Shown here: positions 28,900 through 63,508 of the stretch, in pieces
Layout of the letters: every line of letters starts with the position of its first letter
How positions within the stretch are numbered: the first letter of the stretch is position 1
Assembly: GCA_002269645.1 (NCBI GenBank)
Contig: NIVC01001849.1
Coordinates: 124,001-188,000, forward strand
From: Macrostomum lignano
Taxonomy: Eukaryota
Direction of reading: 5' to 3'
DNA: 64,000 nucleotides
The notes under the pieces: generated by a model
The model's input: the letters and a program-made list of their open reading frames with translations, nothing else
What the model was told of the DNA's origin: nothing
Database searches by the model: none
Position numbers and translations under genes: made by a program

Positions 28900-29230
28900 T
28901 ATGGCTGGCTATTCGAGACACCATTTCTAAGAACAGCATAGTGTTCATTGCGATTGTGCTCAACGAACTGCTCATGGTGGCCTGCACTGTGCGCACCTGG
29001 CACTGGCTGATGTCTGTAGCGGAGCTGCTCAGTCTGCTCTGCTACCTGCTGGCTGTTGTTCTGCCTAATTATTTTGGTTTGTTTGCGCTTAATTTGTCTG
29101 TGTATTCCTGGAGATTGTTGCAGATTAGCGAGGAGACTGTTGCAGATTAGTGAGTAGCCTGTTACAGATTAGTGAGGAGACTAGTGATTAGTGAGAAGAT
29201 TCTTGCAGATTAGTGAGGAGACTGATACTA
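28900..29230 (+). pseudogene. Duplicated fragment of the ninth located ATP9 exon (17834-18095) plus the start of its intron minisatellite
   Basis: [36 protein letters not shown](V)LPNYF matches about 17950-18095 and is followed by a few TTGCAGATTAGTGAG units. Confidence 0.9.
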
Positions 29231-31332: not shown

Positions 31333-32007
<675 letters not shown>

Positions 32008-33523: not shown

Positions 33524-33946
33524 GTTTTGAGGCACTAGCGTGCTGATACACTCGAATGTGGTCTTATCGGCGTTCAAAATACTGATACGAGCTATGCTAT
33601 TACAAACTTATCATAGATATTTATAATGTTAGACGCACCCATTTACCTGTACTAACACAGCTTCGTACCCCTTGCGTGCCCCCTCTGTGTTAATTCGTCT
33701 AACTAGCAAACTATGAAAAAAGCAAAAAGGATGGGTAGGGCGGAAAAATACCACGCCACCACCCAACACTACCCCCGAGCACAATGCCGAGGGTTTTAAA
33801 TACAAAGCTCAAACCTAAGAAGACGACTTGTCTCAGTTCTTCAAAGCTTCTGTCTGTTGTGGCAGTGGGGGTAGCAGGCGTGTAAGGTAGTTGGCGTGAG
33901 AGGTTATCAGAGACTACCGATAAACGACCTGTTACAGGTTTAAAAC

Positions 33947-34277
33947 TATGGCTGGCTATTCGAGACACCATTTCTAAGAACAGCATAGTGTTCATTGCGA
34001 TTGTGCTCAACGAACTGCTCATGGTGGCCTGCACTGTGCGCACCTGGCACTGGCTGATGTCTGTAGCGGAGCTGCTCAGTCTGCTCTGCTACCTGCTGGC
34101 TGTTGTTCTGCCTAATTATTTTGGTTTGTTTGCGCTTAATTTGTCTGTGTATTCCTGGAGATTGTTGCAGATTAGCGAGGAGACTGTTGCAGATTAGTGA
34201 GTAGCCTGTTACAGATTAGTGAGGAGACTAGTGATTAGTGAGAAGATTCTTGCAGATTAGTGAGGAGACTGATACTA
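33947..34277 (+). pseudogene. Second copy of the ATP9 exon fragment
   Basis: Same sequence as 28900-29230, offset 5,047. Confidence 0.9.
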
Positions 34278-36379: not shown

Positions 36380-37054
<675 letters not shown>

Positions 37055-37889
37055 ATCTTTTGCTTTGTCGAGGGGGGTTATCGCGTCAAAACAGGCAAGC
37101 AATATGCCCTAGCGAGAAGACGGAGTCTTGCTGCATTTTCAAGTTTTCGTCATGTGATCTGTGTTTTAGTGGGCAGTTAAAAGTGTCCAGTTTAAATCTA
37201 AGATTTTGCACAGTTGCTACAGAACTTGTGCAAAGAATTCGCGCACTCGCATGTACGTACACTTCATTCCTAGTAGTTAGCAGGAAAATGGGGTGCACGA
37301 AAGCCAATTGCTCGAGCTTTTGCTGTTGGTACAGCAGTTTGCAGTACAGTTTATACACGGTCAATGGTCATACGCAGGAGTTTGTTTTTTGCAATTTAAA
37401 GTTCTCAAAACAACTTTGACGAATAGGCCGCTTTACTATTAAGCTGTTTATTAAGTGCGAGCATATCAGTGATACGTGATGCTACGGGCAGATTGACTTA
37501 CATAATAGCTTAGAAAGTAAGCTTTGTAGTTTCTGCTGCGCTCAAATGGGAAGTCCTGAAAACATTTCAATGGTGGTTTTATTTTCTATTCTAGAATTTA
37601 TAGTCCTTGATGAGATTTATGTGCAGGAACTCGTGCTAGTTCGATTTAAAAACTGAAACGGATAAAAATTTGTTAATTTTTTAATACCCTATTCGGGCGA
37701 ATCAACTGGTTCGTCAAATTATTGTCAATCCTCAATGTTTTTTTTACTTACTGTAAGTCTTGCAGCAAAAATGTGACAAATTTTCAGCGGGATTTCAGCA
37801 TTGTAGACTGGAGAGTTTGCACTGTTCTATTCGTGAAAAGCAAAAGCAGTGTTCTCTCCGCCTACTGCTGGCTCGTAACGCAAGCTTGG

Positions 37890-38570
37890 TTACATGAGTA
37901 GAGGGGCATAAAAGTTGCAAACTGGAGTATCATACATGAGCAATCGTAATCGTGCTAAGAATTGGTCGTAGGAGGCGAACAGCAGGCCGCAGGAGAGTTG
38001 CTTCTTTTTCTTCTTGCCGTCGTCCTGCAGCGCGTGGTAGTGTGCCCGTACAGCCTCGTTGAAGACGGCGTCCAAGTTTTTCCTCATCTTAGCTGAACAC
38101 TCGACAAAACGGTCGGCTTTGATTTCTTTGGCCAGTTGTTTGCCTTCAGCTGTGGAAATCGGGTCCTTTACCGCTTCTCCGCCGACTTGATCGTCCCGGG
38201 TATCGGTCTTGGTTGCAACGAGAACTACCGGAGAACGGCTGAACCCGCCGAAGTGACGCAACTCCGGCACCCACTTGGCTTTTACGTTTTGACAGCTATC
38301 TCTGTTATCCACTGAATAGCACAGCAAGAATACGTTGGTGTCTTTGTAACCCAATGGCCGCAGTCTGTCGTAGCTCTCCTGCCCGGCCGTGTCGTATATG
38401 GACAGCCTTACTGCCTTTCCGTCAACTGAAATGTAATGCGAGCTATCGTCGGCCACGGTTGGCGTGTACTCTTCCGGAAATTTGTTCGATGTGTAGACCA
38501 GGACCATGCTGGTCTTGCCAACTGTGCCGTCACCAACCAGCACTAACTTTATCGTGACTGTGTTCGACAT
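37890..38570 (-). CDS. Divergent Rho GTPase, copy C, read-through C-terminus
   Basis: MSNTVTIKLVLVGDGTVGKT..YTPTVADDS..DTAGQES; CGLL is followed by 29 extra residues. Confidence 0.75.
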   Translation of the reverse strand: MSNTVTIKLVLVGDGTVGKTSMVLVYTSNKFPEEYTPTVADDSSHYISVDGKAVRLSIYDTAGQESYDRLRPLGYKDTNVFLLCYSVDNRDSCQNVKAKWVPELRHFGGFSRSPVVLVATKTDTRDDQVGGEAVKDPISTAEGKQLAKEIKADRFVECSAKMRKNLDAVFNEAVRAHYHALQDDGKKKKKQLSCGLLFASYDQFLARLRLLMYDTPVCNFYAPLLM

Positions 38571-38951
38571 GTTTTGAGGCACTAATGTGCGCTCGAATGT
38601 GGTTTAGAACTTTGCTTCTTATAGCCGTAGTAAATCAAAGGGAACTTTCTAATAGCTGTGGTCCTTTCGCGCACAGAAGTTTCTGAATTTCTCCGACATG
38701 CTGAACAGCTTCTTATACCGGGCGTGCATGCAGCTAATTGTCTGTTCATCTTCTCATAAACTTGCGTTCTTTAGTTTCTAATTATAACTGAAAATTTCTA
38801 TAGCTCAACAGTCGTGCATACGAGCAAGTCTGGCCGCATTGCAGCTTTAATTGAAGCGGATTCGAATAAATACGAGTAGTACAGTCATTTAGTTTTCCTG
38901 AGCATTGCAATGCAGCACCTTTAAACTGAATCAAAAAGTGGGGTATCTGGA

Positions 38952-44358: not shown

Positions 44359-47300
44359 ATGCCACGAAAGTGGTGCTCCTGGTCATGGAGCCCGACGCAT
44401 CAGGAGAGTTCACCGGAGCCGAGCCGAGTTCAAACCAGCATCAAGTGCCTTGCAGTCGGAGACAGAGCCGTTGGCAAGTCCTCGCTGTTACTTACTTTAG
44501 CTCACGAAGGAGCAAGGCTGGTTTTTTTAATCAAACAGAACTCATCAACCATTTTGGAACGAACAAGGAAGCTCTTCTTGCTGGATATAGGGTGCTTCGA
44601 AGGAGACTCAAACAGACAGGTGAACATTGACTACTCCCAAGCAGATGTGCTTCTCGTATGTTTCTCTCTAGTCGGACAGGGCAGCTTTGAGAGCGTACAG
44701 ACAAGGTGGCACGCTGAGTTGAGTCAACGCTGTCCAGAAATTCCAATCATTCTTGTTGGAACGAAGCTGGACCTGCGAAACGACAGCTCAACAATCGTCA
44801 GGTTAAAGGAGAGGGATCAGGCACCCATAACAAATCAGCAGGGCATGACAATGGCAAAGAAAATCAATGCAATGAGTTACCTTGAGTGCTCCGCCCTGAC
44901 TTGTGATGGTCTGACTGAAGTCATCGGCGCAATCGTAAGAAGCAGTGTTTCGGGATCTCCAAGAGATTCAGTCACAGTGGCACGGAAACCAAATCACAGA
45001 AGGTACGCTTGTCAATAAAAATTTAATTTTAAAGTATATTCTTCGATAGTAAAAGTCATGGAATCAGTAAATATTAGTAAATCTCATATTAACTGACGCG
45101 AATACTTGCATTGTAAACGTGATAGAGTGGCCATCACATAGTTACATGTGAAAAGCGTGATTCAACTAGACAGATATGTAAAGATATTCCAAGAGAAAAG
45201 TTTCCTAAGACATAAACATCTCCAGGACCTTAGCTGAGGTTATCAGTACAAAGTTGCCATTGGTACGGTATTGCACCTGATGAATTGTTTCTTCTCAGTG
45301 ATTTCTTCAAGTTACTCTGGAAACTTGCACGACTGATTTCTAGGAGGCTTCTCGGCATCAGGTCTTTCTTCCGCTCGATAAGGGAATCCTGGAAAATGAA
45401 CCCAGTGTTCAAACTAAGTTATGATTTGTAAGTAATACTCGAAGTCTTCATAAAAAATTTGCAGGCCCCTGCTATTGCCAGATATCCGCAATTGACTTTG
45501 TGCTTTCAATTTATAGTTCCATAATCGATGCACCAACTGAAGATTGCGACAATGATGACTGTGTATACGATTTACTTCAGGATGCAGCGACGGGTATTTT
45601 GACTGCGTGAGTAATCCAACCATTTTTCCTCAGATGCAGAGCCACAGTTCAACGTTGAAAATAATCAAACACATTTTTAGTTCGGAAGCTGAACCCTGTT
45701 CGGAATACGAGATTGTTGATTCGGACGATGAATCGAACGGAAACAACGCTAGTTCGAACAATCGACACTATGAGAAGACCGAACTCAAGCACGCAGTTCA
45801 AACTGATTTTCTACAGCAGAGGGATGACCTTGCGGAGAACAGTGCTAATGGGTGAGCAGGAAATCCTTTGTAGACAGAGCCGCTGTAGCTCGTACTTCCC
45901 CCTGTAGTGTGTGTGTATTTAGGGATCAACGGACTGGGCATAACTGTTTGTCACTGTGCTAGCTTCTGGCGTACTTGCCATGCAGAGCACAAAGCCCTAA
46001 GCTAACTAAGTTGTACAATGTAAACGCACATTTTTACAGCGAGGAGGAAAGAAAACATGCTGATTTTACGTCAACAAAAATGGACAAAGTATCGGAGCAA
46101 GAGTTAAGGCAACCAACAACAAAGCGGAAGATCGTGCTGATCGGTGACGAAGGCGTGGGCAAAACCTGTCTGATTTTGTCCCATGCCAAACGCATCTGTC
46201 CTGCTGACTATGTTCCTACTGAAGCTGACGATTGTATTCCTAGCTCGGATGGCAGCGCCGACCTCGGTCTGTGGGACCTCAGCGGCTCGAGGGACTTCGA
46301 CAGAGTGCGGCCAGAGAGCTACGGACTGGCGGGCGTCATCCTCATCTGCTTTTCCATAGCCAGTCCATCCACTTTCGACAGCGTGCTTAACCGCTGGCGG
46401 CCGGAGGTGGCTCGCTACTGCCCTGACGCCCCAATTATTTTGGTTGGGACCAAAGCAGACTTGCGGACTGACCCAGTCGCTCTGAAGAGGTTGCGACGCA
46501 TGAGACTAGTCCCGATAGCTCCAACCCAGGGCGATGACCTGGCCAAGGAGATCGGCGCTGTCGCCTATCTGGAGTGCTCGGCCTTGCATCGAATCGGAAT
46601 AGACGATCTCTTTAAAAAGGCTTCACAGGTTTCTTTCAGGCAAGTTTGGTTTTCGATGATTTTTATGAATTTCTTTGCAAGTCATTCTGAAATCTAAAAA
46701 AATCAAGAATAAGCTAGAGTTGATTGGTTTGATGTTATTACGATTTCACAGAATTTTCTATATTTTCTATATCCATACACTAAAATGGTCTTTTCCGCTA
46801 GAAATATTTAATCAGGGTTCAGCTTTGAGTTTTAAAGTTTGTCTTAATCTCTGTAAGTCTTTGAACATTTGAGTTCTTAAATCTTAAGTAATCGATACTG
46901 AATCGGCCGATATAAATATCCACGACAGACAGGCAGATGATTGAATTTGAATTTTTCTGTGGTTGAATTGCACTACTGCTCAATGTGTTATGTTCGCTGG
47001 GATAAAAAAAGTGCTTTCAGACATACAAGCCATAAATCTCATATTCTATCGATACTAGATTTATTCTTAGTGTGATTATTATAGCTTTTTCCAGCCATTT
47101 TAGGGCATTTGCGCATTTAAATTAATCCTTAAAGATGCTTCCCAAAGTAATGGAGCTTTTGTCTTTGGTACCAAGGCTGGCATGGCACTGCAGCATTAAT
47201 ATTGGTCCAACAGGCATCAATTTGGTCCATAGCGGCTATGAAACCCTATCACGAGTTTGTAATGCAATTTTTCACTTTACCAGTGCAAGGTGACGTCAAA

Positions 47301-48622
47301 AATGCAATCTGCTCAACTATAACAAAGAGCATTTTAGTATGGTCGAAACGTTGCTTTAATCAGAAGCCCTTGATGTTCGTTCGATAGCCTAGCGTATGGC
47401 CAACGATTCAAGACCAGATTTTGCACCTCTTCAGCAGTTGCAAATGAAGCATTGTTTTCGTCCACATTGCTTGATAGTCATGCCTAAATGAAAATCTAGG
47501 GGTGAAACTATAGAGCTATGGACCGGATTGATGCTTGTTGGACCAAATTAAATGCAGCTGTGCCATCCTTGCTACCATAGACAAAAGCTCCGTTACATTG
47601 GTAAGCATATCTTGGATTCAATTAAATGCGTAAAAGCCCAAATGAGCTGCAAAAAGCTTTATCATATTTAATCAGTATCGACTACGAACGTGAAAGAGAT
47701 AAGAGATCCGCGGCACAAACACTCTTGTTTTATGCGTTTATGGATTCACTTAAGTTGATAATTAGCTAAAGCTTTCCTCTCAAATTTACCATCCAGACGG
47801 GATGACGTCTACGCACATGTATACAGCGAAGCGAAGTCCTCTCACCCTAGAGTTCCGCGGCCGCCGCCTCTGCCGCCGCATCCGAATGAATTCTACAAGG
47901 TCACATCGCCGCAGGGTCTTTGTCTTGTTGTGAATATTTACAAATACGATAAAGGCTTCAATCTCGAAAATCGACTTGGATCCGATTTAGATGTAAAGCG
48001 AGTAGAGAGCGTCTTTCGCAAGCTCAACTTTCAGGTGACAGTGCTGGAGAATCTGAAGTGTCACGAGATTGCAAAGCTCATGAGCAAAATAGCAATCTCC
48101 GAAGAAACTGAGTCACACGGCTGCTTCTTCTGCTTTTTGATGGCCCACGGCTCAAACGGACGCATCTACGGAAGCGATGGCGAGTCTTTGGAGATTCGCT
48201 CGATCCTGGAGAGATTTCGCGCCAACCAGTGCTTCAATCTGCGTCACAAGCCGAAGGCGTTCTTCATCCAGGCATGCCGTGGAAGCGACAATGAGTCCGA
48301 GAAAGATACTCAGGTGGACAAGTTTGTCTCTGACAACACGGGATTGCACTGTCCCTTGGACAGCGATTTCCTGTTGTGCTACGCCACAACCGAGGGCTAC
48401 TCTGCCCTTCGGGACAAAGAAGGTGGTTCACCATTCGTGCAGACCCTGTGCGATGTACTTGAAGAGCGACACTCAAGTGAGCACCTGGTGGATATCATGA
48501 CTAACGTAAACTGTCGGCTCAAGGAGAACCCGATCAAAGAGAAGAGCCAAAATTTGTATTCCGTAACCGAGACTGTCACCAGGTTGTCCAAGAAGTTTTT
48601 CCTTGATCCAACTCTCGCATGA
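44359..48622 (+). CDS. Predicted Rho-like/Rho-like/caspase fusion gene (gene W), 746 aa. Exons: 44359-45002, 45681-45851, 46040-46639, 47797-48622; optional exon 45299-45361
   Basis: Donors AG|GTACGC, GG|GTGAGC and CAG|GCAAGT and acceptors TTTTTAG|, TTTACAG| and ATCCAG| are all phase 2; exon total is 2,241 nt with no internal stop. The caspase frame has MAHGSNG and QACRG and no in-frame ATG upstream of the domain. Confidence 0.65.
47082..47663. mobile_element. MITE with about 165-bp imperfect terminal inverted repeats, in the Rho-caspase intron
   Basis: 47082-47250 is the reverse complement of 47497-47663 (GGAGCTTTTGTCT, TTGGTCCAACA.GCATCAAT, GGTCCATAGC blocks). Confidence 0.8.
47797..48622 (+). 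CDS. Caspase catalytic domain exon (p20+p10) preceded by a Pro-rich segment
   Basis: FYKVTSPQGLCLVVNIY, RLGSDLD, CFLMAHG, PKAFFIQACRG, DSDFLLCYAT, ALRDKEGGSPFVQTLC, TRLSKKFF. Confidence 0.93.
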
Positions 48623-50329
48623 TGTTTTGTTAATATTTTAACGTCTGCAGTTCTCAACAAAATAGTGCGCTCGAATAGTGGAAGTTATCTGCTATTTTAA
48701 TTTAGACCAATGATCACTTTGATCGTTTGGTCACAGACTAATTAACTGATAAAGTCTTTCTAGATCTTGTGCGTTCCATTCAAGGATTGATACGAGTATA
48801 TACTGCCTGATTGCTGGGGTCTGAAGACGAAAATCTTAACTACGCAAAGCGAAGGACCTGCCCTGCCATTCACTGTTATTGGATGAAATTTCAAAAAGTT
48901 TTTTTGGAATTCTCTATGGAGTCTCGTTCCCTAATTTAATCAGAAATTTAGTCTAGCTGAGCTATAGTCTGAGCTATAGACTTTCGTGTCTTCGATTCCA
49001 GTGTCGCCTTATTTGAAAGAATAAGGGACATCAGGGCGGAACATTTTCGTGTCGTTTGAGTGCTCATTGCTACTGAATTGGCAAAAGTACAAGATAAACA
49101 CTTGGAAACTAAAATCTGCACTAACAAATGCTTGACTCGAGTAACCAGGGTGGGCAGAACTTGTAGCTCAATTTGACCATAGACAAAATTTCTGCTTATT
49201 GTGGGGCCAAGGTTCAACTAAAATTTCATTCAATAGCAGCGAACGGTAGGAAAAGTCGCTCACTTTGCGTAGTTAAATTTTTCGTCCCCGGACTGTCAAT
49301 CCAGGTACAACTAGTACTGTTAAATCTCATCAAACCAGGTGTTTACGATTTTTGTTGACTTGTTGACGGGCCGCTTTCAGTGTTGACGATCTCACCGCCT
49401 GCTATCTAGTTAATAAACACAGTTTTGATTACGAGCCGTGAGGATTTGCGAACCCAAGTCAATACGGTATATTGCGCATATTTTTAGTTAGCAATTAGTG
49501 AGTCAGTTTGCAGGACTCTGTTCTGACTGAATATTGTGCTGATAATAATGAATAAATACGTATTACTTGCAGTGTGATAAGATTTTCAGTGCAATCTAGA
49601 ATAATAATGAATTATTAATACGTATTTTACTTTATGCAGTGTGATATAGACATTTTCCTATACTTGTATATTTGTTTAGGAAGCATATCTATCGAATAGG
49701 TACATGTAAACTCATCATGCTATTGTAAATGTCAGAGTTACGAGCGGACTTCGCATGTGCAAAACTTAGGCCAGGGGCTGTTCTATCCAGAAAAAAATGT
49801 CAATAAAAGTGACAGATACAAATTTTTCTTTATTGCACCTTGTCACTTCAAAAACTACAAATATACAAAACACAGCCCTGCTGATCCAAAACTTCTGCGT
49901 TGCCTGTCTGCAGTTACGAAACCGAATCGGGGTGAATTTCCAGGCCCGCATTGCAGCGGAAGCTTTTGTTGCTGGAAGCTCGACTTTGCAAAATAGGGAA
50001 ATCTGGACCATGAGGAGAGAATAGTGTTGTAAAGTCTGCCATCAGCACTCTATATCGATTTTTGTCTCTTTACCAAGACATGCATGCAGCTCACTTCCGG
50101 TGACAGAATTCACTCTTCTACATGCCTCTCTATCACAAAATGCGAGCATTAACAGTTGTATAAATGCATGGCATCATGCACAGCTGAATTCTTAAGTACA
50201 CTTGGGTGTGTTGCGATAAGCTTGAATGTACGTTCGTCAAGTCGACTCGTTGTGTACATAACTGTTTCAGCGCAGAAATTGTTGCCCCAACCATTAAGGC
50301 TAAGAAATGATTAAGTGTGGATTTGCTTA

Positions 50330-50645
50330 GTTTCGATTTGGCTCTTGATCTACAAGCTAAAATGCCAATCTCGAAGTGAACCGTTGCTGGCGAGCCATCT
50401 AAGCAACGAATCAATTTTCCACCGTCCTTTCTACAAAAATATCTGATGCCTATTTAGCCTCTGTTTGAGCAATAGAGCCCTAACAACCCAGTTATTCTGG
50501 TTGGATCCAAGCAGAACTTCCCAGAGCGACAAGACAACCAATAAAAATGGAGAGAGAAAAGAAGTGGACACCGATTTCTAGACGATAAGCGGAAAAAATT
50601 AGCTACTAAAATCAAACAAATATTTTAAGAGCTCCGCACCTATGA
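50330..50645 (+). pseudogene. Heavily decayed Rho-like remnant
   Basis: Broken frames give RPFYKN, PNNPVILVGSK, WTPISRR*AEKLATKIK and KYFKSSA, which follow the order of the Rho C-terminal half. Confidence 0.5.
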
Positions 50646-50968
50646 GTTTGACTACTTATAAGAGTTTGACTCAAGAGTGTTTTCAAAAGAGCCCGTTGAA
50701 AACGATACCGTGACAAGAATCGCTAAAGAGCCATTGCAAACAACTCACTAGTGACTCTTGTGCGTCTGGGGCGACTCTTGTGACTTTTTAACAACTAAAA
50801 CTGCGACGGAGAGGTGACTGTTGCATCACAAGCGCATCACGTGAGTTTTAGAATCGTAAAAGAGTCGCGAAAAAGTCGTCCAATAATCGTTGTGCTGGCG
50901 CTTAAGTTCCTACAACTCGGTAGGCTAGTTTAAGTGCAATTAGGGTTCATAGGCTAATACTGAGTGTT

Positions 50969-51781
50969 CCTCGCCCGATGAAAACGGTACCTAGGCCAAG
51001 AAGTGTCCCGGAATCACTTGCGTCGCCTCAGAGTCGTTTCCGACGTGTTGCAGATGACAGGTCAATTAGGAAAGAAGTGATTCGAAACGACTCTAAAACG
51101 ACCAGATGAATTCGAGTCACATTTCCGGCGTTTCAGAGGCGTTCTGCAGTCGCATAAGAGTCGCAGAAGCTCTTCAGCGTTGCTGTAGAATCTTGAGCGC
51201 ATCACTTCTGAGCCGATGAGCATGCGTTTTCTATTCGCCAAAAAATGGCCGGTAGTAACGACTCTGTAACGCGTCCATAACGCCTACGAAGTGACGCACT
51301 AACGATTCTACAGTGACGCTAAAGCTCTTCTTCTGCGACTTTTTTGCGACTGCAGAGCGCCGCTGAACCGCCGGAAATGTGAGTCTAATTCATCAAGCGA
51401 TGCAAATGCGCTTCATTCACAACTCAGCGATTATAATGCAACTCTGGAACGCTTCAAGTATGACTCTACGTCCCCCATAATTGTTAGGCTCGTATACCGT
51501 CGCCCCAGAGTCACTAGATTCGCGTCAGAATCACTTGCGTCGCCCCAGAATCAGAGCCGCAGACAAGCCGCAGACAAGTTTCAAAGTGATTCTGGGGCGA
51601 CTCTTAGACGACTTTTTGGCGACTTTTACCGTAGATGTCGTCGTTTTAGAGTCGTTTAGAGTCACTTCTTTTCTATTTGACCTACTCTGTATGTCATCTG
51701 CAACGCGTCTGAAACGACTCTGGGGCGACGCAAGAGACTCCGGGACGCTTTTTGGCCTGGGTACCGTTTTCATCGGGGAGG
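50969..51781. mobile_element. About 810-bp near-palindromic MITE/foldback element
   Basis: Ends CCTCGCCCGATGAAAACGGTACC.. and ..GGTACCGTTTTCATCGGGGAGG; arms stay complementary for about 190 bp, plus an inner inverted pair (about 51105-51140 / 51360-51395). Confidence 0.8.
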
Positions 51782-52029
51782 TCACAAGGATTGTCTTAGC
51801 TATAGCGCTTCTCAAAGAATAAAGTTAGAATTAGAAATTTAATTTTAGAAACTTCGATCGTTTCACCCTATGCCACTCTTTACCGAACTATTCGTTCGGG
51901 TTCTTATTCACACTCCGTGCTTTTAGAAGAAGACGTAAGTTTTCTGACAAGCAAACCTGGCTAGCTCCTATATAACCTATGAATCAACATTTCATTTGCA
52001 TGCTACTACTCGTATAGTGTCTAAGCACT

Positions 52030-52660
52030 GGGAGGCCGCCTCGCCTTACTTGCCCAGCTACCTTACGCGGGCACCGTTGAGACAAAATCAGATCCTTGCC
52101 GATGGGGTATTTAAATTAACTTGACAACAGGTACCATCAGGTGACATCCCCAGGGCCTAGAGCTTTGGTTATTAATCTCTGTGAATTCAATCAGAATGAA
52201 TAGAGACGGCTCACAGACATGAGAGCCCGTGTGCACGAGAATTTGAAGTGCAACTAGATTGCTGAACTACGTAAAAACTGCTTCGCACTCATCTCTAAGA
52301 TTAAAGATCACGGATGCTTTTTCTGCTTCATAATGGCTCACAGAATGCACGATCGGATCCATGGTAGTGACGGCGAGCCTCTAGAAATTCAATCCATCCT
52401 GGGCCGCTACTAAGTTAGAGAACGTACTTGGTCGATCCGAACTACTCGATGGACAGCGAATTCTTGATGTGCTACACCAACACTGAGGACTACATAGCTT
52501 TCAGAGATGAGATCAATTTATTCAGGCCATGTGCGACCTCGAGAAGGCGCATGGAAGAGCGCATATCGGACATGCGGACTCATGTAAATAAGCGCCTCAA
52601 ACCCGGACTGCGGCAGGAGGCAGCAAAGTTTTTGCAGTCTCGCAGACGGCGTTGCAGTCA
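52030..52660 (+). pseudogene. Caspase pseudogene, paralog of 47797-48622
   Basis: YHQVTSPGPRALVINL, HENLKCN*IAEL, DHGCFFCFIMAH, IHGSDGEPLEIQSILGR, DSEFLMCY, FIQAMCD. It has an in-frame stop and the QACRG segment is deleted. Confidence 0.85.
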
Positions 52661-53001
52661 TCAAAGAAATGCTTTCTACATGTAAATCCAACCCCTGGCT
52701 GATCTTGATGGCAGTCTCCAGTGACTCGACTCTATTAAGTTTAAAAGCAGACTTAATTAATAAAAGCAGACTCATGTAATTCAACTCCGAAGCAATGGGT
52801 CAAGAGTTTTAATTCTAATGGTGCTCTTAATTAAAATGTTTAATTTTTAGTTTTTCCTCGGAAAGTTTTTTTTCAGAAAACTACTCGACATTCTTCGTGA
52901 CGGTTGTAGACTTGCTCACTTAGTATGCTACTCGTACGAGTAGTAACTTGCAGTATATTTTCTTTGATACATAATTCTGTAAAACATAGGGGGGACTTGA
53001 A

Positions 53002-53080
<79 letters not shown>
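53002..53080. repeat. (TC)n microsatellite with a TCTGTC leader
   Basis: Directly visible. Confidence 0.97.
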
Positions 53081-53081
<1 letters not shown>

Positions 53082-53477
53082 TTTTCTGCCCTCTTTTATT
53101 CTTAAACATAAATAGAAATTTCAAGCACACAAACATTTACCTGCTGGCCTTGATGGATGTACAGATACTATTTTGTCTACTTCTCTACTTCGCCCAATGC
53201 AGTGAAAACTCAGAGGCCCTCTTTTCATTCTTCTGCCTTTTTTGTAGTTCGCCTGCTTACCCGTCTAGACGTACACGGTGCTATCAGAATCGCGGAATTG
53301 TGCTGTCTTCTGTTTTGTAAGAGCTAAATATAACTCCGGCCCTTTCTATCCAAATATGTACACCCGAAACATCACGGATGAGAAATAACGATGTAGAACG
53401 TTATTTAGTGCCTCCTTCGACTTGGCAGTTAACCCAGCTCTGCAAAAAAACTTGTCGGAAGTTTGATAGCAGCAATC

Positions 53478-55827
53478 ATGAGAATGATCAAATGTGTTAT
53501 TGTTGGCGACTCTACCGCTGGCAAGACCTGCATGATTGAGACCTACGTAAATGGCTCAATGCCAGACACGTTTATTCCAACAATTTACAAAACGTACTCA
53601 GCTCGGCTGCCCATGGAATCGGAGTCTATCGAACTGGCGCTGACAGACACGGGAGGCAGTGAAGGCTACGACACTCTCAGACCAGTCGCCTATCCGCAGA
53701 CAGACGTGTTTATCATCTGCCTTGACTTGACCAAGTCAGCCGAACTTGTGCTTGGCAATGTGCGTACAAAGTGGTACCCGGAGTTGAGCCACCACTGCCC
53801 CTCAGCACGCATTATTTTGGTTGGAACAAAGCTTGACATGCGAACAGGTTTGAAAATAAGCGAGACCAAGGAAGAAGATGCTGAGAAAAACCTTACAGCT
53901 GAGCAAGCCAACGAATTCGTCAAGGAAATCAATGCGGCAAAGTACATGGAATGCTCCTCAATTACTCAGCAAGGATTAAAAGAAGTGTTCGAAGAGGCCG
54001 CTCGCTTAGTTCTTAACTCTTCTGACGCTCGCAATGGCAAAAAGAAGAAAAATGAACACCACGGGTGCGTAAAGATAGTTTCAGCCACTGTTTGAGTTCA
54101 CTTGTAGGTTAAAAATGTTGTACATGTGTATCAAGAATCTTTTATAAAGGGCCAACAGAAGTGAAAGTTATCAGCAAAGAGCTTTGAAAAATAATCAAAG
54201 CTCTTTAGATTCTGGCTTGGGTACTTCTCGAGTTTTTTCACAGATTTAAAATGCACGAGCTATCAAAATGCGTGAGCGAGAACGCTTTCAAAAACAAGAT
54301 CGCCACACACTACTTAACAACTTGCAATAATTTCAGAGATTCCAAGAAAGTCGTTTCGTTCCTTCATTCGCTATCGTCGTCGAGAAGGAACTCTGAAACG
54401 TCTATCAAGTAATTTGCTGGAGCACACTTTATTCCTGAAATATATTCATTAAAATATTTTGCAACAAGATTTCCAATGAACCCTTGCAGGCAAAGTGTTC
54501 TTTCCGATGGTGGAACCAAAGATTCCGAGACCGAAACTTCACCTGATGAGCCGAGCATTAAGTAAATACTCTAGCTCCTCTTCTGGAGTAATTTTTGTTT
54601 TAAAATTCTGTTAGAATTCTTTTTAATTAGCCACTAATACGAGTTTTTTGCACGAGCTTATTTAAAAAAACTTGCAGATCTCCATCATCGATTAAAGCCT
54701 TTTTCCGCGGTTTACGCCCTGGGAAAACATACTCGTACAATATCGCATCGTACGACTGTTTCTTAAATTTGAAATTATTCAGAATAATAGCATTCCTTGC
54801 CAAAACCAGAGCAGTGGAAAATGTATCCCATATGCTCATATTTTTTAGACAACAGAAGTCGCACGATAAGAAAACCAAAGCTTCGAGTGAAACTTGCGAG
54901 CCAGCGGACACTTCATCCGCTGAAGTTTTGGATCAGCCCCAACAGCCTGCTTCGAGGTAAGCTTTTTCTAACTGGAACTCAAGCTATGAAGGATTGCAGA
55001 CACAGTTATCTGTCTACGGGAATGCGTAATCTTCCCTCTTAACAATGTCTTGCAGTACACAAGAAGCCGTGAGTCCCGAGCTCAGCGAAGACGAGCAGCC
55101 GACATCCGAAACAGAAAGTGACGACGAAAGCTCGGACACGGAGTCCGCCAGTGCTCAGCGAGAGCCAGTCTCGGAAAACCTCAGAGAGCCTAGTTCTCGA
55201 GTTGATTATCCGGAAACTATTGTCGTGTTTCGAACCGCCGAATCAAAGACGAAGAGTGACACAATAACATTAAAAGTCGTCATAGTTGGAGATGAAGCGG
55301 TTGGCAAGACCAGTCTGCTGACCGCATTCGCAGAGGACCAGTGTCCTCAGGAGTATGTTCCCACAGAGACCGACGACTGCTTTGCCGTGGAGGGTTCACT
55401 GGCTGGAAGCCAACTGTGTCTCCGCTTGTGGGACGTGAGCTGTGCGGAGTCCTTTGACCGCTTAAGGCCTCTGCGGTATCGCCAATCAGATGTGTTTATC
55501 ATCTGCTTCTCCCTCATCAATTCTGCTAGTTTCGAGAATGTACGGGCCAAGTGGTACCCGGAAGTGAGCCGTCATTGTCCTGAAAAGCCATTTATCCTGG
55601 TCGGAACGAATTCCGATCTGCGCGATGACCCAGAGACCATCGACAAGCTGGAGGAAAGGAATCTCGTTCCAATCAGCGTGACTCAGGGCGAGCAGTTGGC
55701 TAAAGAGATCGGTGCTGAAGTGTATCTAGAGTGCTCCGCTCTGTGTAGAACAGCTGTGGAAGACATCTTTAGACAGGCGGTATTGGCTTCCGTGAGAAAA
55801 ACAGAAAGCAAAAATCATCACGGGTAG
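53478..55827 (+). CDS. Predicted tandem atypical-Rho gene (gene Y), 555 aa if it stops at 55827. Exons: 53478-54064, 54337-54408, 54490-54561, 54678-54734, 54849-54956, 55056-55827
   Basis: Domain 1: GDSTAGKT / DTGGSE. Domain 2: GDEAVGKT / YVPTETDDC / DVSCAE. Five GT-AG introns, all phase 2, keep an open frame. A further phase-2 donor at 55824 may extend the gene. Confidence 0.6.
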
Positions 55828-57517
55828 ATCGATCGAAATTGAATACAAGAAACCAACGCACTCATGACAATATGGGCTAAATCTGTATTCAATACAAATC
55901 GTGCATGACAACCTCTATTAGCAGTACCATTTTAAACGCATATTCGGCTCCATATTAAAATGATCCTGAATTCACAGTACCTGCTGTTTTTCGTTCGTAC
56001 TCTCGTAGCTTTCGATTTCCAGACTCATAAGAACTTTAACATAACTTGTAAGCCAATATCATCAGTTGCTTTGGTCCGTCTTTGATGACATTACACCATA
56101 TGTGCAGACGCTTACGCAGGACCCGTAACTTGATAGATACGAGCGTAGATTAATGGATTAGGTCGTAGTAACTGCGCACTGTAATTGCACATGTGTTGTT
56201 GAGCAGCTCCCGTTCTTAGATTACCGTTGATTCTTAACGTACTCATTTTTTCACATTCACATAGTTCCCTTGATATTCAGTTGTAAATAGGCTTGCTATT
56301 TTTCTGCCATATTTTCACCTTAAAACTATCAGTAGCACACAGATTCTTTGCTTCTTTTGTTATCATGCAGTGTGTTGAGGTCTCATCAAATTCAAATGCA
56401 GCGCCCCATTTTTAGATTTATCCATATTTTCTGCGCCTTCCTACTTTAAGTGACTTTTTGAGCAAAATATCTCCTTTAAGCAGAAATTAAAGGAGACTAA
56501 ATAAAATATTTTTTGTTACCCGCTACTCTCTGATAGCTGCCGCACGTGTTTCTTTAGACCTAAAGAAATGAGCTTTATTGAAAACCAGGCCTGAATTTTA
56601 GTGAAGATTACATGGCATACGAGGGTACTAAGCATACGACGTATGTCACTGTATGTTAAATTTAATGTCGAATGCATGTAAAAGTCGACAAGTAAAGCAA
56701 GTCTGCATCTTCAATAAAGCGTCTCACAAACGACAGTCAATCATGCTTTGCAGTCGGGGTCGCCATCCATTAATTGTCAGATTAAAAATGGCACCGAAAC
56801 GGCGTTTAAAAGTGCGTGAGAAGGTCGCAAAAAGAGGTATCTTATGAAAGACACTCTTTGAGTACAAGGTTGGCGCTTACAGCGTTATCAGAGTGCTTGC
56901 ATGAGAGGCTGGGTGCTGGCGGAATATACGAAGTAGACGGAGTAAGGCAAATACGAGCCATAGCTCTCTGTTGTCTACTCTCTCTACTCTTGGCTCCAAG
57001 GTTGCTTGGTCGTATTGGAGAGGAGAGTTGCACTCAGCAGCATCACCGTCACGTCTTCAGCGTAAGCCAGGCTCGAGCTTCTACTCTGCAATATGCAAAC
57101 AGATTTTTTTCGAAACCCTTTTTCAAAGAATTTTTTTTTGTTTATTCGCTCCAGCTCAAAATGTGCTACAAAATGTGGTGCTTGAGTCAGATTCAATGGA
57201 GCTGGCCTGAAGAACAATGCGTTTCTGATATCAATGATATTGTGCTCAAATGAATACCCCTCTTCCCTCCCCCTCCCCAGCATTAGGGCCAGTGTTTTAT
57301 GCTTGCAATAAAGACAGTTTAAACTGAAAGATGGACGCTTCATGAACAATAACGAACGTTAGTTTCCGAGGGCATTTTATCCACTAGACTGCAGAGCAAA
57401 GAATTACCATCTTAAATTGAATGCAATCTTGAAAATGAGACGGGACTTTGCCCAGTTGTTTTTTAGGTATACAGCGTTGATAGACAGCCTGGCGCTAGCA
57501 GCTGACAGAGCAGCAGC

Positions 57518-60500
57518 ATGAGTTCAAACAAGATCAATTGCCTCGCCATCGGCGACGAAGCGGTTGGCAAGTCCTGCCTGATTGACTGCCAATTAGGCAT
57601 AGAATTCCAGCGCATGCACATCCCCACTGACTGCTTTAAGAAACACAGCATGGAGAGCACTTTAGAGGGACACACATTTCAGATCACACTGTGGGACTCG
57701 CCCAGTAAGGACGAATGCTTTGTCGACATGCCGAGTTACCCAAAGGCGAATGTTGTGCTTCTCTGCTTTGCCATCGATTGCCGAGCGAGCTATGAAAACG
57801 TGAGAAGAAAATGGTTTAAAAGGTGCAGAAAGCTCTTCCACAAGGCGTCCTTTATTCTGGTTGGAACCAAGCGGGACCTGCGAGACAGTTCGACATCGAT
57901 TAGTCAGTTCGAAGGCCGTGATCTGCGAAAAATTATCAACGCTGAGACTTACAAAGAGTGCTCCGCTCTGAATCCTGAGAGTGTCCGGGAAGTTTTTGAA
58001 GAGATTATTTTCACGAAGTACAATCAGACTTTGTCAAAAACAAACAAAAGGTACGTGTTCATTTTACTTTTTATTACTTTTCGTCTGATATGCCTTACGC
58101 TGAATATTTTACTACGCTCTCCTAATATTCGTTTCCTTTAAACTTTATTGCAGCAGGGCACTAAGTATTCTCCCGTCAAAAGCCATCTTTTGGAGAAGAA
58201 CTAAGAGTTCGAACGAGTACAGGTATCTTTTATATTAGAATGGCTACGTGTACGAGATGTTCTTGGTCTCGAATCATTTGATTGCGTCTTTGATTCAGAG
58301 AGTATCGACCATATCTTATCTGATACTGCGTGACAATATTCTCTGTGCAGATTTCACAATTTGCCATTGTAGCATCCTTTAGTCATTGGTGTCTCAAGTT
58401 CATCAGTAAATTGCACTGATGACCTTCACGAAAATGATAGGAAGAGCAACGCAAAAGCGCGAACAGTCAATACTCTCTTTATCTGTCGCAAACAAAACAG
58501 TAAATTAAAATCATTTTCTTAGAAAAAATTAACCGTGAAAAAATAATCATATTTCCTCAATAGTGCCCAAAAAAACTGATGAATGTGAGTATCTACAACC
58601 CGATCCGATTCGAGCGGCGACACGTGATCAAGGAATCGAACCGTAAGCTTAAAATTTTTTGGTGTTCAATCTCGACAACTTGTTTAAGTTTGCTCAGTAT
58701 ACTACTAGCATACTACATGTACTCAAAAGCTCCAGTTGGGTGCGCTGACAAAACAATGCTGTTCTGCTCTGCTTAAAAAAATCTGAAAAAAATTTAAGCT
58801 CCCGTTTACTTTCCATCACTCATATGAGAGGCGCCGCAACTGCGGTATTTATTTACAGACTTATACCTATCAATAGCCAGTAGTAGTTTTCCATTGATTA
58901 AAAGAGTTTAAAAGCAAATTTACCAAAGTGGAGTTCAAAAAAGGCGGAACAGAGTCACCGGAAAACGCGTCTGACTCTCGCGATGCGACCTCCCTCTGGT
59001 ACCTCATTTGATTAAATGAACACCCACATCAACTTGGCGCTTGCACTCGTAAATTCTCGTCGTGCTTTTCACACCCTTGTGGGCAACCCCCCCCCCACCC
59101 TATAGCACAGAGAGTGCACATGCCTGACAATTAGAAAGTCAAATTGCGGGCAACCCCCCCCCCTATAGCACAGAGAGTACACATGCCTGGCAATTAGAAA
59201 GTCAAATTGCGGGCAACCCCCCCCCCTCCAAGGCACGGAGAGTTGCACATGCCTGGCAATTAGAAAGTCAAATTGCGGGCAACCCCCCCTCCAAGGCACG
59301 GAGAGTTGCACATGCTTGGCAATTAGAAAGTCAAATTGCGGGCAACCCCCCCCCCTCCAAGGCACGGAGAGTTGCACATGCCTGGCAATTAGAAAGTCAA
59401 AGGGCCGCTTTACAAATTTGCGTACAGAATGAGTTCAGGAGTCAGCGGAATCAGAATTGCCTCAGCGCCGGGTTGTGGGACGATTTCGCACATCACATTC
59501 CCACGTCACACAAAGCGATGCGTCAGGGTGCCCACAGCCCTCCTGCAAATATGAGCGTTCTTCGTTATTTCTAAAAAAAGTCGGTCTTCCCTAGTTGAGG
59601 ATCCCCCATCAGTTACGGTGCTTGAAAAATGTCGAAATAGGGTGCCTACGTAGTCTCGCACCCAATGCCTGCTGAATGTCCGGAAGTTTCGCCTAGAAGA
59701 AGGCCGTTAAAGTCAGAGACAATAACGAAATTTGAAGGCTTGGCAAGGCCGCACTGAGTTGCAGCGCTTGCTCGTAATTTCTGCCTAGGGGGTGCACTGA
59801 ATGCATTCTGAGGGAAAAAATCCGGACCTTCTGGCAAAATCATTGAATATCTTTGAATATCATTGTTGAATATCATTATTATTGAATGTCATTGAAATCT
59901 CGGACGATTTCGAAGGCTAGTGACATGAATCTTCTTTGACCATGTGCGAGAAAAATCTAGCCATCCTTGTGAATTTTCACTGTAGCAAAAATGTCTGGCT
60001 GGATCCTTAACAGAAATTGTTTTTTACTCTTCCTGTTATTAAACATAAAATTCGTTTTCTTCAAATGAAATATTTCTAGAGATTTTGATTATCCTTTGGC
60101 CGGAGCAACTGGAGGCGCCGATCCAGACATCTATACGTGTCCGTCTATAGATTTATACAACCGGCATGGCTACATGAAGGCGGATGTTCAGGCAACAAAT
60201 CCGTGAGAAAAAGAAATTTTATTTTACGAGCTACATTTGACTACTCGCAATAAAACATAATAGGGGCGCTTCACAAGAAATTTCACAACTTTGAAAACCC
60301 GTGCTAGTCACTCCCGCAATCCAAAATTTAAAATAACTTCGCGATATGAAAATTTGAGCTTGTGAAGTTTCACTCTTCAAAAAAGTAACAGATAAGACTT
60401 TTCCAGGATGTGAAATTTCAAACTGGCGAATGCGACCCCGAAATTCTTAAAATGTACAAATACGAGCTAGCTTGACTAATTACATGACTTACGTAGAGGC

Positions 60501-63500
60501 AGAATGGGCATACCTCACTGAGGATTTTTTCCTGGAGGCAGCGATGTCTGGCAACACAGTAACGTCCCGAGGGCCATATGTCCTTGCGGTTGAGTTGGAC
60601 AGGGCCTGCGGAGGGTGGGGGAATGACAGGAGATAGGCACGCGGGATTTCCGGCAGTTGGGGTGTTAGCCCACCTCTCCCTGTGCTGCCACCCACTGATT
60701 GATCCGGGTGGTGACAACGTACAAATAGCTACTTGAAAGCCTAATTTAGGTCAAATCTTTCTCTTCAGCAAACAGGAAACTCTTCAGCTTAGATTTCTGC
60801 ACTTTTGAGTATCACTTGAAGCCAAAGTGTATCTTGAATAAATCGATCAGCTATCGATATCTTGAAATAATTTCTGATATACAAGAGAAAATATTCAATC
60901 TATACTACTTATAGTACACTTTTAATATTTTTTGTTTCGCATCTGGGGTCTTTACTCAAACCATCAAGCCGACGTGATAAAAGCACTAAAACGGTTATTT
61001 GCAGGACTAATGCGGGCTGCTACAACAGGGAGGCTACAAATGAAGAATATGTGTACGACTATATTGATGATGAGCTATCGGAATCTAACAAACAAGACAC
61101 AATTCAACAAAGTCCGTTCAAGACTGACGACCTTGGTCAGAGGTAGGCATGCAAGATTCTCTTAGTGTGTCTTTCTGGATATATTTGCAATGCTCTTCCT
61201 TGAAATTCCCTCCACAGAGCACCTTAGATAGTTAATACGAGCGTATGTAGTGCACAAGTTTAATAAACAGTTTAGTCACAATTTCAACTGTCACAGTTTA
61301 GATTTGCAAACCAAAAACTGGCCCGCGAAACAATAAGGACTGTGAGACCAAAGATCCCTTACGAGACCGGAGAGGAGAATGAGTAAAGAGTGGAGAGGGG
61401 AGATGAGAGATGGAAGTAAAGAAAGGAGAGGATGGGAGAGAGGATAGAGGGGAGAGGGGAGATGAGAAAGGAGAAGAGAAAATGAAAAGAGAGCTGAGAA
61501 GAGACAAACCTTGAGCGGATGGGATTGCGATTGTGAAGTTTCAAAGGACTGGAGGGGCGGAAAGAGAGGCTTTGAGGGCCGGAGTTTGACAACCTCTGGG
61601 ATAAGACCAAGCTTTGACAATTGGCTTATTTTTGTTGCAATTTCTCTGTACGAGCTAAGCTATTAGTCCAACGACCTTATGTAGATTATTGCTAATTTAT
61701 TGTGAATTCTGAATTATAAAGCCTATTATTGAGCCTTCATCGAAGAATATTCAACCTAGTTGTAGGGCTTTACACGATTAATCAACTTCAGTTAACTGAT
61801 AATTGAACGCAACAATATAACTTAAACATTTCTACACCTTTGAAGGCCTCTACCACAAGCCCAGGAAATACCTCTGCCACCACCACAGCTTCTGCCTCCA
61901 GTACCTGACAGGTACATATTTTTTGCATGAAACTTCTAAATCAATGATAAAAGCGTTATGATTTTATCCTAGTTTTCAACTAAAAATCAACAAACATCGA
62001 ATCGTTTTAGAGCGTTAAAAAAGAGACAGGTTCAAATGAAAGCAGAGCAAGAGGAACGGAACAAAAACATAGCTGCCGTTGTCCCTGCGTTGAAACTAAA
62101 AATCAATGTCGTTGGTGACGAGAAGGTCGGCAAAACCTGTCTGCTCGTGGCCTATGCTGAAGGACTCTGCCCAGTTGAGTATGTTCCTACTGAGACCGAC
62201 GACTGCTTATCAAAAGAGGTTCAGGTAGATGGATATACGATTCGCGTTGGCCTGTGGGATAACAGTGGCTCGAGAGACTATGACCGAATGCGGCCGGGAA
62301 ACTATGAAGGGACAGACGTCGTCCTCATCTGCTTCTCCATTGCCAGTCCCGCTACCTTTGACAGCGTGCGCACCCGATGGCTTCCAGAGATAGCTCTTCA
62401 CTGCTCGAACACTCCAATAATTTTGGTTGGGACCAAGATGGATGCGCTCGACGATAGAGTTGAAATGGAGAAACTGCACAGAAAGCGGCTTGCTCCCATC
62501 AGCAGCTTGCAGGCGACAGCTCTGGCCAAAGATATTGGCGCTGAATTGTACATTGAGTGCTCGGCTCTGAGAAGATCGGGGCTAGATAGCCTTTTCAAGG
62601 CGGCCGTAAGAGCGGCTTTCGAAAAACAAAAGTAAGATTTTTTAAGCATCTATCTCAAAAAAACTTTGCAACAGCAACAGCTGAAACTATCGTTTTGTTG
62701 TTCCTACGCTCGTATTATGGTAAAGTTTCAACGATGATGGGGGTTCTTTTGTCCACCATTAGATTTTGCGTCTTGTTTTTACAGAAAAATTCTGGAAGTC
62801 GGCTCAATACAAGAAAAGGAAAGCAGCAAAACTGAAGCCTCAGAGCCTCACGATCAGCTGGATGAGCCTCACCGTGATTTCGACGAGTGTAACGAATTTG
62901 CCTCGTAAGTTAACTTGAAATATCCTATTAAAAAGTATACATGCAATAGATGATCACCGAATCTCACATTTAAACAGTGCTCAAAGTTTCGACTCCAACG
63001 ACCATAGAGACGTGGAATATGACGTTTGTTCTGGCCAATCTGAGGGTTTATTTAAGCCCCATAAAGCACAGCCGCCGGTTGTGCCTCCGCATCCGATTCC
63101 AAAGCCGCGAGGTATTCGTCGATTAAACTCCAGTACTGAGGCACAGTCAGGAGTCATCGAACAAACAGAAGTTTATCCTTCACAGGAACCTACTGGACCC
63201 GCTGAACAAACTGAAGTTTATCCTTCACAGGAACCTACTGGACCCGCTGAACAAGCTGAAGTTTATCCTTCACAGGAACCTACTGGACCCGCTGAACAAA
63301 CTGAAGTTTATCCTTCACAGGAACCTACTGGACCCGCTGAACAAACTGAAGTTTATCCTTCACAGGAACCTACTGGACCCGCTGAACAAACTGAAGTTTA
63401 TCCTTCACAGGAACCTACTGGACCCGCTGAACAAACTGAAGTTTATCCTTCACAGGAACCTAGAGTTTCGTTCCAAGCTGCGACACAAAAGTTAAACGAT

Positions 63501-63508
63501 CTGAACAG
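57518..63508 (+). CDS. Predicted tandem atypical-Rho gene (gene X), 3'-incomplete. Exons: 57518-58050, 58154-58222, 61005-61142, 61846-61911, 62011-62631, 62785-62904, 62978-63508
   Basis: Domain 1: GDEAVGKS / DSPSKD. Domain 2: GDEKVGKT / YVPTETDDC / DNSGSR. Acidic Tyr-rich, Pro-rich and repeat exons are all flanked by phase-2 GT/AG sites. The last donor is AG|GTGAGC at 63509. Confidence 0.6.
59080..59402. repeat. About 62-bp tandem repeat, 5 copies
   Basis: Unit GCACATGCCTGGCAATTAGAAAGTCAAATTGCGGGCAACCCCCCC(CTCCAAGGCACGGAGAGTT). Confidence 0.92.
61300..61600 (-). mobile_element. hAT-type MITE related to 38952-39300, inverted
   Basis: Reverse complement reads CAGAGGTTGTCAAACTCCGGCCCTCAAAGC..., with the same GGCCCTCAAAGC block and pyrimidine-rich interior. 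Confidence 0.6.
63159..63461 (+). repeat. In-frame 45-bp coding repeat (EQTEVYPSQEPTGPA), about 6.7 copies
   Basis: Period is 45 (CACAGG at 63181 and 63226); it lies inside the open exon 62978-63508. Confidence 0.92.

Follow-up and report, generated by a model that had tools for sequence, protein, structure and literature searches.

The window analysed here, a 64-kb stretch of Macrostomum lignano DNA (contig NIVC01001849.1, positions 124001–188000, assembly GCA_002269645.1, Mlig_3_7), holds about 14 Rho-like coding stretches. Those before 44 kb are intronless, stand-alone genes that terminate in a CAAX box (CDLL, CSVL, CTLL and CGLL are the C-termini found), and those after 44.3 kb are exons belonging to larger genes. 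Three of these larger genes, called W, Y and X and all lying on the plus strand, are the subject of this work. W and X encode two Rho domains followed by a caspase, and Y encodes two Rho domains. The Rho–Rho–caspase architecture has not been described before, is apparently restricted to this species and was found nowhere else in the databases searched. An initial annotation of this DNA had singled out the second Rho domains of the three genes (here W2, Y2 and X2) as a subfamily fused to a caspase; the fusion is transcript-supported in W and X, and Y lacks the caspase. The models deposited in GenBank for Mlig_3_7 are derived from RNA-seq by means of StringTie, TACO, TBONE and TransDecoder (PMC5730564).

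Gene W (PAA63378.1) spans 44359–48622 and encodes 804 aa in the order Rho–Rho–caspase, with GenBank hits to Ras, Roc and Peptidase_C14. Its six exons (44359–45002, 45344–45427, 45517–45606, 45681–45851, 46040–46639 and 47797–48622) match that record, and their reconstruction translates identically to it. When the possible exon chains were enumerated, restrictive splice assumptions gave no solution; once a GC donor was admitted, the top-scoring model was PAA63378.1. Exon 1 carries the first Rho domain, W1, which is degenerate (G12R, T35 lost, G60C, CAAX absent), and ends at the donor AAG/GTACGC. Exons 2–4 (45344–45851) code for an acidic, Tyr-rich linker that includes EYEIVDSDDE at 45703–45732. 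Exon 5 encodes W2, in which TKAD and ECSAL are kept, and closes with the GC donor CAG/GCAAGT; the intron that begins at 46640 is of the GC–AG type. Finally, exon 6 begins with a Pro-rich linker (PRPPPLPPHP, 47855–47884) and continues with a caspase-3/7-like domain that contains AHG (48143–48151), QACRG (48269–48283) and an intersubunit TQVD (48308–48319).

Gene X is best followed in a sister contig, NIVC01003792.1, which is 99–99.6% identical to the window and has fuller gene models. There, X encodes 1015 aa from the Rho domain at 57518 onwards, in the order Ras–Ras–Peptidase_C14 and over ten GT–AG exons. Exon 1 (57518–58050) holds the first Rho domain, X1, with G12E, G60S and a partly deleted Rho insert, and ends at the donor AAG/GTACGT. 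Five linker exons follow (58154–58222, 58564–58642, 60080–60202, 61005–61142 and 61846–61911), and exon 7 (62011–62631), identical in full between the two contigs, encodes X2. Exons 8 and 9 (62785–63508) code for a linker predicted to be disordered, with QPPVVPPHPIPKP at 63069–63107. Between X2 and the caspase lies a 45-nt tandem repeat (63159–63462, 6.8 copies, 98% matches) that codes for about seven 15-aa EQTEVYPSQEPTGPA repeats and has no counterpart in W. The caspase exon, exon 10, starts at 63987, leaves the window at 64000 and goes on to the window-equivalent position 64755, so that the caspase domain itself (window-equivalent 64042–64725) falls just past the end of the window. It has intact AHG and QACRG motifs and an intersubunit AWVD, and is 52% identical to the caspase of W.

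In NIVC01001849.1, X is annotated as a 757-aa product starting at 60174 (PAA63380.1). The reason for this shorter model is a run of seven A residues in exon 3 (58569–58575), six in NIVC01003792.1, which puts X1 and X2 out of frame with each other. The run may be a PacBio homopolymer error or a real truncating allele. An older UniRef model, A0A1I8GCE2 (1207 aa), joins Y and X by splicing. No record of X1 or X2 as a stand-alone single-exon gene was found when these were looked up, as is consistent with their being internal exons. Two local peculiarities of X may also be mentioned. Exon 5 shows 10 mismatches in 138 nt between the contigs (7 codons differ nonsynonymously and 2 synonymously), while the exons that flank it (621 nt and 531 nt) are 100% identical; it may be a locally hypervariable acidic and Tyr-containing linker (EEYVYDYIDDE) or a gene-conversion tract. 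Spurious long open reading frames (ORFs) on both strands arise from a tandem array in intron 3 (59077–59401, period 63/129 bp, 5 copies, 91% matches, C-rich core).

Gene Y, of 560 aa in the sister contig, runs from 53478 to a stop at 55827 and has two Ras domains and no caspase. Exon 1 (53478–54064, donor HHG/GTGCGT) encodes Y1, which is Rnd-like in carrying G12S and Q61S; its polybasic tail is removed by splicing, and it has no CAAX end. The last exon, which starts at 55056 or 55086 and ends at 55827 with the stop codon 55825–55827, encodes an acidic linker and Y2. The exons in between are ambiguous, as 232 GT–AG-compatible chains can produce the 560-aa protein and only the first and last exons are certain. 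A search for a caspase remnant downstream of Y2 gave no signal over noise. Between W and Y lies a decayed Rho–caspase paralogue (50479–52678, plus strand). A 14-aa Rho remnant (50479–50520) is followed by what is left of a caspase large subunit (52126–52410), in which AHG has become AHR, there is a deletion and the frame is interrupted by two stops. Nothing is left of the QACRG region, and the remnant of the small subunit (52517–52678), itself interrupted by a stop, is read in a different frame.

Several features of these genes bear on the reality of the fusion. Each Rho exon stops at a good GT or GC donor just where the CAAX box would sit, and such a box is absent from all six Rho domains in these genes. 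The introns of X are all of phase 2, and the exon lengths of W give the same phase; consequently, each exon, and with it each Rho domain, is symmetric, and its duplication, shuffling or skipping leaves the frame intact. The caspase exons of W and X have no in-frame ATG ahead of the first strand of the fold. The spliced leader of M. lignano does have an ATG at its end (PMC8629364); joined to these exons, this ATG is out of frame and soon meets stops. In Pfam searches, full-length W and X each show two Ras domains and one Peptidase_C14 domain (E=6e-48 and 1e-44 for the latter), and no CARD, DED or other death-fold domain was detected. The nearest PDB relatives of both caspases are caspase-7 and caspase-3, and both have an Asp-containing intersubunit linker. 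The N-terminal extension that precedes the caspase, about 560 aa in W and 770 aa in X, is neither a short prodomain nor a CARD or DED prodomain.

The linker between the second Rho domain and the caspase is far longer in X (about 220 aa) than in W (about 45 aa), and both versions contain a proline-rich motif, PPxxPPHP (47855–47884 in W and 63069–63107 in X). This motif is one of only two linker features common to W and X; the other, located between the Rho domains, is the acidic Tyr stretch, EYEIVDSDDE in W (45703–45732) and EEYVYDYIDDE in X (61042–61074). These shared stretches may be docking or phosphorylation sites. An AlphaFold2 run on the 757-aa X product, with an alignment of 57 sequences, gave a predicted local confidence (pLDDT) mostly above 90 for X2, of about 65–87 for the caspase and below 50 for the linkers. 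The overall predicted template modelling score (pTM) was 0.46, and thus no fixed docking between the domains is predicted.

The second Rho domains of the three genes share a set of motifs that the initial annotation had pointed out, and each of these was found exactly where it had been placed, within a single exon. In W2, the P-loop is GDEGVGKT (46143–46166), switch I is CPADYVPTEADDC (46197–46235) and switch II is WDLSGS (46272–46289). The corresponding elements in Y2 are GDEAVGKT (55288–55311), CPQEYVPTETDDC (55342–55380) and WDVSCA (55429–55446), and those in X2 are GDEKVGKT (62114–62137), CPVEYVPTETDDC (62168–62206) and WDNSGS (62255–62272). The domain boundaries given earlier also coincide with true exon edges: W exon 5 starts at 46040, X exon 7 occupies 62011–62631 and 55056 is a good acceptor in Y. 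A gapless alignment with Rac1 bears out the substitutions G12E, F28C, V36E, F37A/T, N39D, Y40C, A59S and Q61S/A, Y32 and T35 being unchanged. The Pfam Ras matches range from E=7e-31 to 4e-37. Also ungapped relative to Rac in W2, Y2 and X2 is the Rho insert helix (Rac1 residues ~123–135), which has an 11-residue deletion in X1.

The pattern of loss and retention was assessed against eight canonical Rho proteins, five from the window together with human Rac1, Cdc42 and RhoA. Fifty-three positions are invariant in this set, and 31 of them are kept by all three second domains, for instance G10, G15, K16, T17, T35, D57, D118, S158 and A159; every nucleotide and Mg ligand is retained. Altered in all three are G12, F28, T58, A59, Q61, H103, V168 and the CAAX residues. 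G12 and Q61, invariant in the canonical proteins, are replaced by E12 throughout and by S61 in W2 and X2 and A61 in Y2. Of the five invariant residues unique to the subfamily, four belong to the P-loop or to a switch region (Fisher p=0.014). W2 and X2 keep T35, DLSG or DNSG, TKAD or TKMD, and CSAL (the G2–G5 motifs), and Y2 has the further changes G60C (DxxG to DVSC) and K116N (TKxD to TNSD). Relative to the worm's own Rac, the domains differ at F28, V36, F37, N39, Y40, T58, A59 and Q61, and the C-terminal tail is also absent. Switch I is rewritten, yet it is conserved among W2, Y2 and X2.

Since the nucleotide and Mg ligands are kept and G12, A59 and Q61, the positions altered in Rnd proteins, are lost, it is a reasonable inference that the second domains are GTPase-deficient and do not cycle, with nucleotide binding preserved. 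F28C probably favours spontaneous nucleotide exchange. Switch I holds the residues of the classic selective effector mutants F37A and Y40C (A/T37 and C40), and the effector loop is predicted to be no longer Rac-like. The proposal that these domains are locked on and cut off from normal effectors is thus supported as far as sequence can take it, through the expected catalytic loss and the F37A/Y40C-type switch I.

Regarding their ancestry, the PDB structures nearest to W2 are Rac1 and RhoG. Neighbour joining groups the six fusion-gene Rho domains in a single clade beside Rac/Cdc42, with (W2,X2),Y2 and W1+X1 as subgroups, and therefore the two-domain arrangement is older than the split between W and X. 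The second domains are Rac-derived, and all three appear to stem from a local Rac-like gene. Nonsynonymous divergence (dN) among them is 0.34–0.45 and synonymous sites are saturated, a combination that is not that of neutral decay. Between W2 and X2, dN is 0.34 and synonymous divergence (dS) about 2, so that dN/dS is at most ~0.17, far from the value near 1 that decay would produce and close to the 0.15–0.20 of stand-alone Rac paralogues (0.15 for Rac_a–Rac_b). The W and X caspases show a dN of 0.42 and a dS of 3.7, the first Rho domains evolve faster (dN ~0.7 for W1 and X1), and the introns and linkers of W and X have no detectable similarity. What local neutral decay looks like can be seen in the nearby dead copy. 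These comparisons show the second domains to be under purifying selection, and no sign of diversifying selection was seen, as dN is well under dS and the motif residues are invariant across paralogues. The family is also expressed: Mlig000293.g3, which falls into one 95% transcript cluster with X and matches it in coding-sequence length, gave counts of 248/207/175/143 in four body fragments and was classed as 'Non-Specific' (PMC7336406, supplementary file 13), its expression being body-wide. Neither neutral decay nor absent expression, which the initial annotation had named as contrary to its proposal, was thus observed.

Beyond this species, an exhaustive profile search with W2, Y2 and X2 against 1.84 billion representative proteins returned M. 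lignano proteins alone at the top; the remaining matches were ordinary or tandem Rac/Rho proteins in which the motifs are absent. A search with full-length W found Ras and caspase together in M. lignano only. The best matches from outside Macrostomum (tandem or merged Rac models, an ENA protein with three Rho domains and multi-Rho proteins of Anaeramoeba) were rejected, as they have neither the motifs nor a caspase. Independently of the present family, proteins with 3–4 Rho domains per chain exist elsewhere in eukaryotes, such as an ENA protein of 786 aa and one of 888 aa in Anaeramoeba ignava. Some of these have a residue other than Gly at position 12, and the 786-aa protein apparently starts with a hydrophobic stretch; the motifs and the caspase are missing from all of them. 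Word-index homology searches with W2 and with the W caspase recovered neither the W nor the X product. W is invisible to such searches owing to a clustering artefact, since the representative of its 90%-identity cluster is a 50-aa ORF that has no relation to it and lies beside a radical-SAM gene on bacterial metagenome contigs. A 2024 survey of lophotrochozoan apoptosis genes described a kinase-like prodomain in one M. lignano caspase and no other unexpected prodomain in platyhelminths (PMC11463336). W and X were thus missed there, and a literature search for these gene identifiers found no mention of them.

The remainder of the window contains other duplicated and repeated elements. An intronless Rac gene (24758–25336) has identical coding sequence on three contigs of GCA_002269645.1. 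At 27793–38584 there is a tandem segmental duplication with a unit of 5,048 bp and 98.9% identity, and each unit includes a minus-strand Rho gene with a CGLL end and one Rac copy. These Rac copies match the intact Rac (24758–25336) up to residue 142 and diverge after it; they may be truncated or spliced in another way. A minisatellite of ~1.1 kb with a period of ~23 bp (22824–23956) adjoins a ribosomal protein L10/L16 gene (22350–22754) and overlaps a strong negative GC skew (-0.45). Further upstream, a 330-aa ORF (5178–6170) has a match (E=2.5e-25) to DDE_Tnp_1_7, a transposase domain of piggyBac type, and precedes a multi-exon P4-ATPase (flippase) gene at ~9.5–17.2 kb.

Activation of a caspase usually depends on a death-fold prodomain (CARD or DED) or on upstream cleavage. 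The reading tentatively favoured here, with a confidence that stops somewhat short of even, is that the second domains are non-cycling Rho modules that serve as a tethered caspase prodomain. They would be permanently loaded with nucleotide, most likely GTP, in the manner of Rnd proteins, and the Rho pair would form a fixed protein-interaction module that stands in for a CARD or DED prodomain. By way of the altered switch surface, the caspase zymogen would be anchored to a partner or platform specific to the lineage, and zymogens brought together there could be activated. Y, as a paralogue consisting of the prodomain only, would compete for the partner, in a similar way to CARD-only proteins and cFLIP. 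The conservation of the rewritten switch I across paralogues agrees with this, as it looks like a surface maintained for a different partner and not like a ruin.

Nevertheless, several observations weigh against the tethered-prodomain reading. GTP loading, absent hydrolysis and a binding partner are all predictions, and F28C could weaken nucleotide binding overall, with G60C and K116N added in Y2. The caspases are executioner-like and, by analogy, would be activated by cleavage, as executioners normally are, and not by recruitment. Orthologues outside M. lignano were not found, so that the conservation is that of paralogues and of two near-identical contigs. The X of the window has the frame-breaking A7 run in linker exon 3. 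Finally, the AlphaFold2 alignment is shallow for contacts between domains, and a docked arrangement would be compatible with the model.

Alternatively, the domains may be pseudo-GTPases that have lost nucleotide binding and act as a mere scaffold or spacer, the motif changes being relics of relaxed catalytic constraint. F28 stacks against the guanine base, and its change to Cys in W2, Y2 and X2 would fit such a loss, as would G60C and K116N in Y2. The far greater degeneration of W1 and X1 (dN ~0.7), with T35 lost in W1 and G60 in both, points in the same direction. On the other hand, W2 and X2 hold the full set of GxxxxGKT, T35, DxxG, TKxD and SAL despite saturated synonymous sites, a retention that is difficult to account for unless nucleotide binding is under selection. 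In addition, the S59/S61 pair is that of Rnd proteins, which are GTP-bound. Loss of binding is unlikely, although it is the most probable of the alternatives.

Lower in probability is the interpretation proposed at first, that of an integrated decoy in which the second Rho domain poses as host Rac/Rho and its modification at Y32 or T35 by bacterial Rho-targeting toxins triggers the attached caspase and cell death. Innate immunity of animals does monitor Rho GTPases: pyrin senses RhoA inactivation, and IMD/RIP senses activated Rac2. In W and X, a target-like domain shares one ORF with an executioner-type caspase, and Y32 and T35 are present in W2, X2 and Y2. The tandem family is lineage-specific, and its pseudogene and its copy lacking the caspase speak of birth-and-death turnover, a pattern typical of immune clusters; expression is body-wide and not gonad-restricted. 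However, Y32 and T35 are kept in all eight canonical Rho proteins, T35 being an Mg/GTP ligand; their retention is expected in any GTP-binding Rho and does not discriminate between hypotheses, and the decoy step, though attractive, draws no specific support from it. Other common toxin targets, Q61 and the prenylated polybasic tail, are lost, and with 5–6 positions of switch I (F28, V36, F37, N39, Y40) unlike the worm's own Rac, the domain would be a poor mimic. The switch residues are invariant despite saturated dS, and X2 is 100% identical between contigs, with no sign of an arms race. Searches of the literature and supplements found no infection or induction data for these genes. The fuller version of the idea, in which W and X would be one-chain devices of effector-triggered immunity whose GTP-frozen Rac-like bait, once modified or bound by a toxin, fires its own caspase, with Y as a protease-less regulator, is slightly more doubtful still. 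If true, it would amount to an integrated decoy in an animal, working without NLRs or inflammasome adaptors.

A narrower explanation concerns only the P-loop. Caspase-3 is reported to cleave Rac1 at VVGD11/G12; a charged P1′ residue (G12E/R) could block the attached caspase, and the loss of GTPase activity would be a by-product. In effect, a charged residue follows xxGD in all four Rho domains of W and X (LIGD-E, VVGD-E, AVGD-R and AIGD-E), and Y1, from the caspase-less gene, has a permissive Ser (IVGD-S). By contrast, Y2 carries Glu despite the absence of a caspase in Y. The idea leaves A59S, Q61S, F28C and switch I unexplained and depends on the reported cleavage site, and such self-protection seems quite improbable. 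Least probable of all is that W, X and Y are non-functional chimeras, young and decaying products of read-through or exon shuffling between a Rho array and a neighbouring caspase gene that happen to be transcribed: one copy is already dead, Y has no caspase, the X of the window has the A7 frame break, the first domains are strongly degenerate and database searches found no orthologues outside the species, but the W/X split is old enough to have erased intron and linker similarity, the frames stay open for 804 and 1015 codons over 6 and 10 exons with catalytic dyads intact and dN well below dS, and the A7/A6 difference, in a homopolymer of a PacBio-based assembly, is possibly an error.

If the paired Rho domains do act as a caspase prodomain, they would represent a new wiring of a death protease to a signalling surface. 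They would also constitute a natural experiment in turning a molecular switch into a fixed adaptor, with the catalytic positions that define Rnd proteins hit independently. M. lignano offers RNA interference, transgenesis and a good genome, so that function is directly testable. Whatever this function may be, W and X belong in lophotrochozoan caspase catalogues.

The closest parallels for the second domains are found among atypical Rho proteins. Rnd proteins have Ser at positions 12, 59 and 61. As in Rnd1–3 (RhoE among them) and RhoH, positions 12, 59 and 61 are replaced in W2, Y2 and X2 (here mostly by E, S and S) and the nucleotide ligands are kept, so that a constitutively GTP-bound, non-cycling state is predicted. 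Nevertheless, there is no orthology with Rnd or RhoH, as the second domains are nearest to Rac1/RhoG and branch beside Rac/Cdc42. Unlike Rnd and RhoH, they also have no CAAX box or membrane anchor, combine F28C with a rewritten switch I and are internal domains of a multi-domain protein. In the latter respect they resemble RhoBTB1–3 and Miro1/2, where a CAAX-less Rho-like G domain with non-canonical catalytic residues is a built-in module, with two per chain in Miro. The partners differ, being a BTB domain, or EF-hands and a transmembrane anchor, in those families and a protease here. Moreover, homology to them is limited to the G fold, and the present family is a recent and apparently species-restricted offshoot of Rac.

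On the protease side, W and X are similar to the long-prodomain caspases with CARD or DED modules, in which the catalytic domain also lies behind a long N-terminal interaction module and a flexible linker, and Y is comparable to ICEBERG/COP and cFLIP as a paralogue of the module without the protease. In contrast to those initiators, W and X have two Rho domains in place of a death fold, and their catalytic domain is nearest to the executioner caspases-3 and -7. The likeness to NLR integrated decoys and to the guarding of RhoA by pyrin is one of concept only, namely a domain resembling a target and coupled to an executor of death or inflammation. Unlike those systems, W and X lack any NLR, pyrin, B30.2 or death-fold domain, and in switch I the Rho domain would copy the host target poorly.

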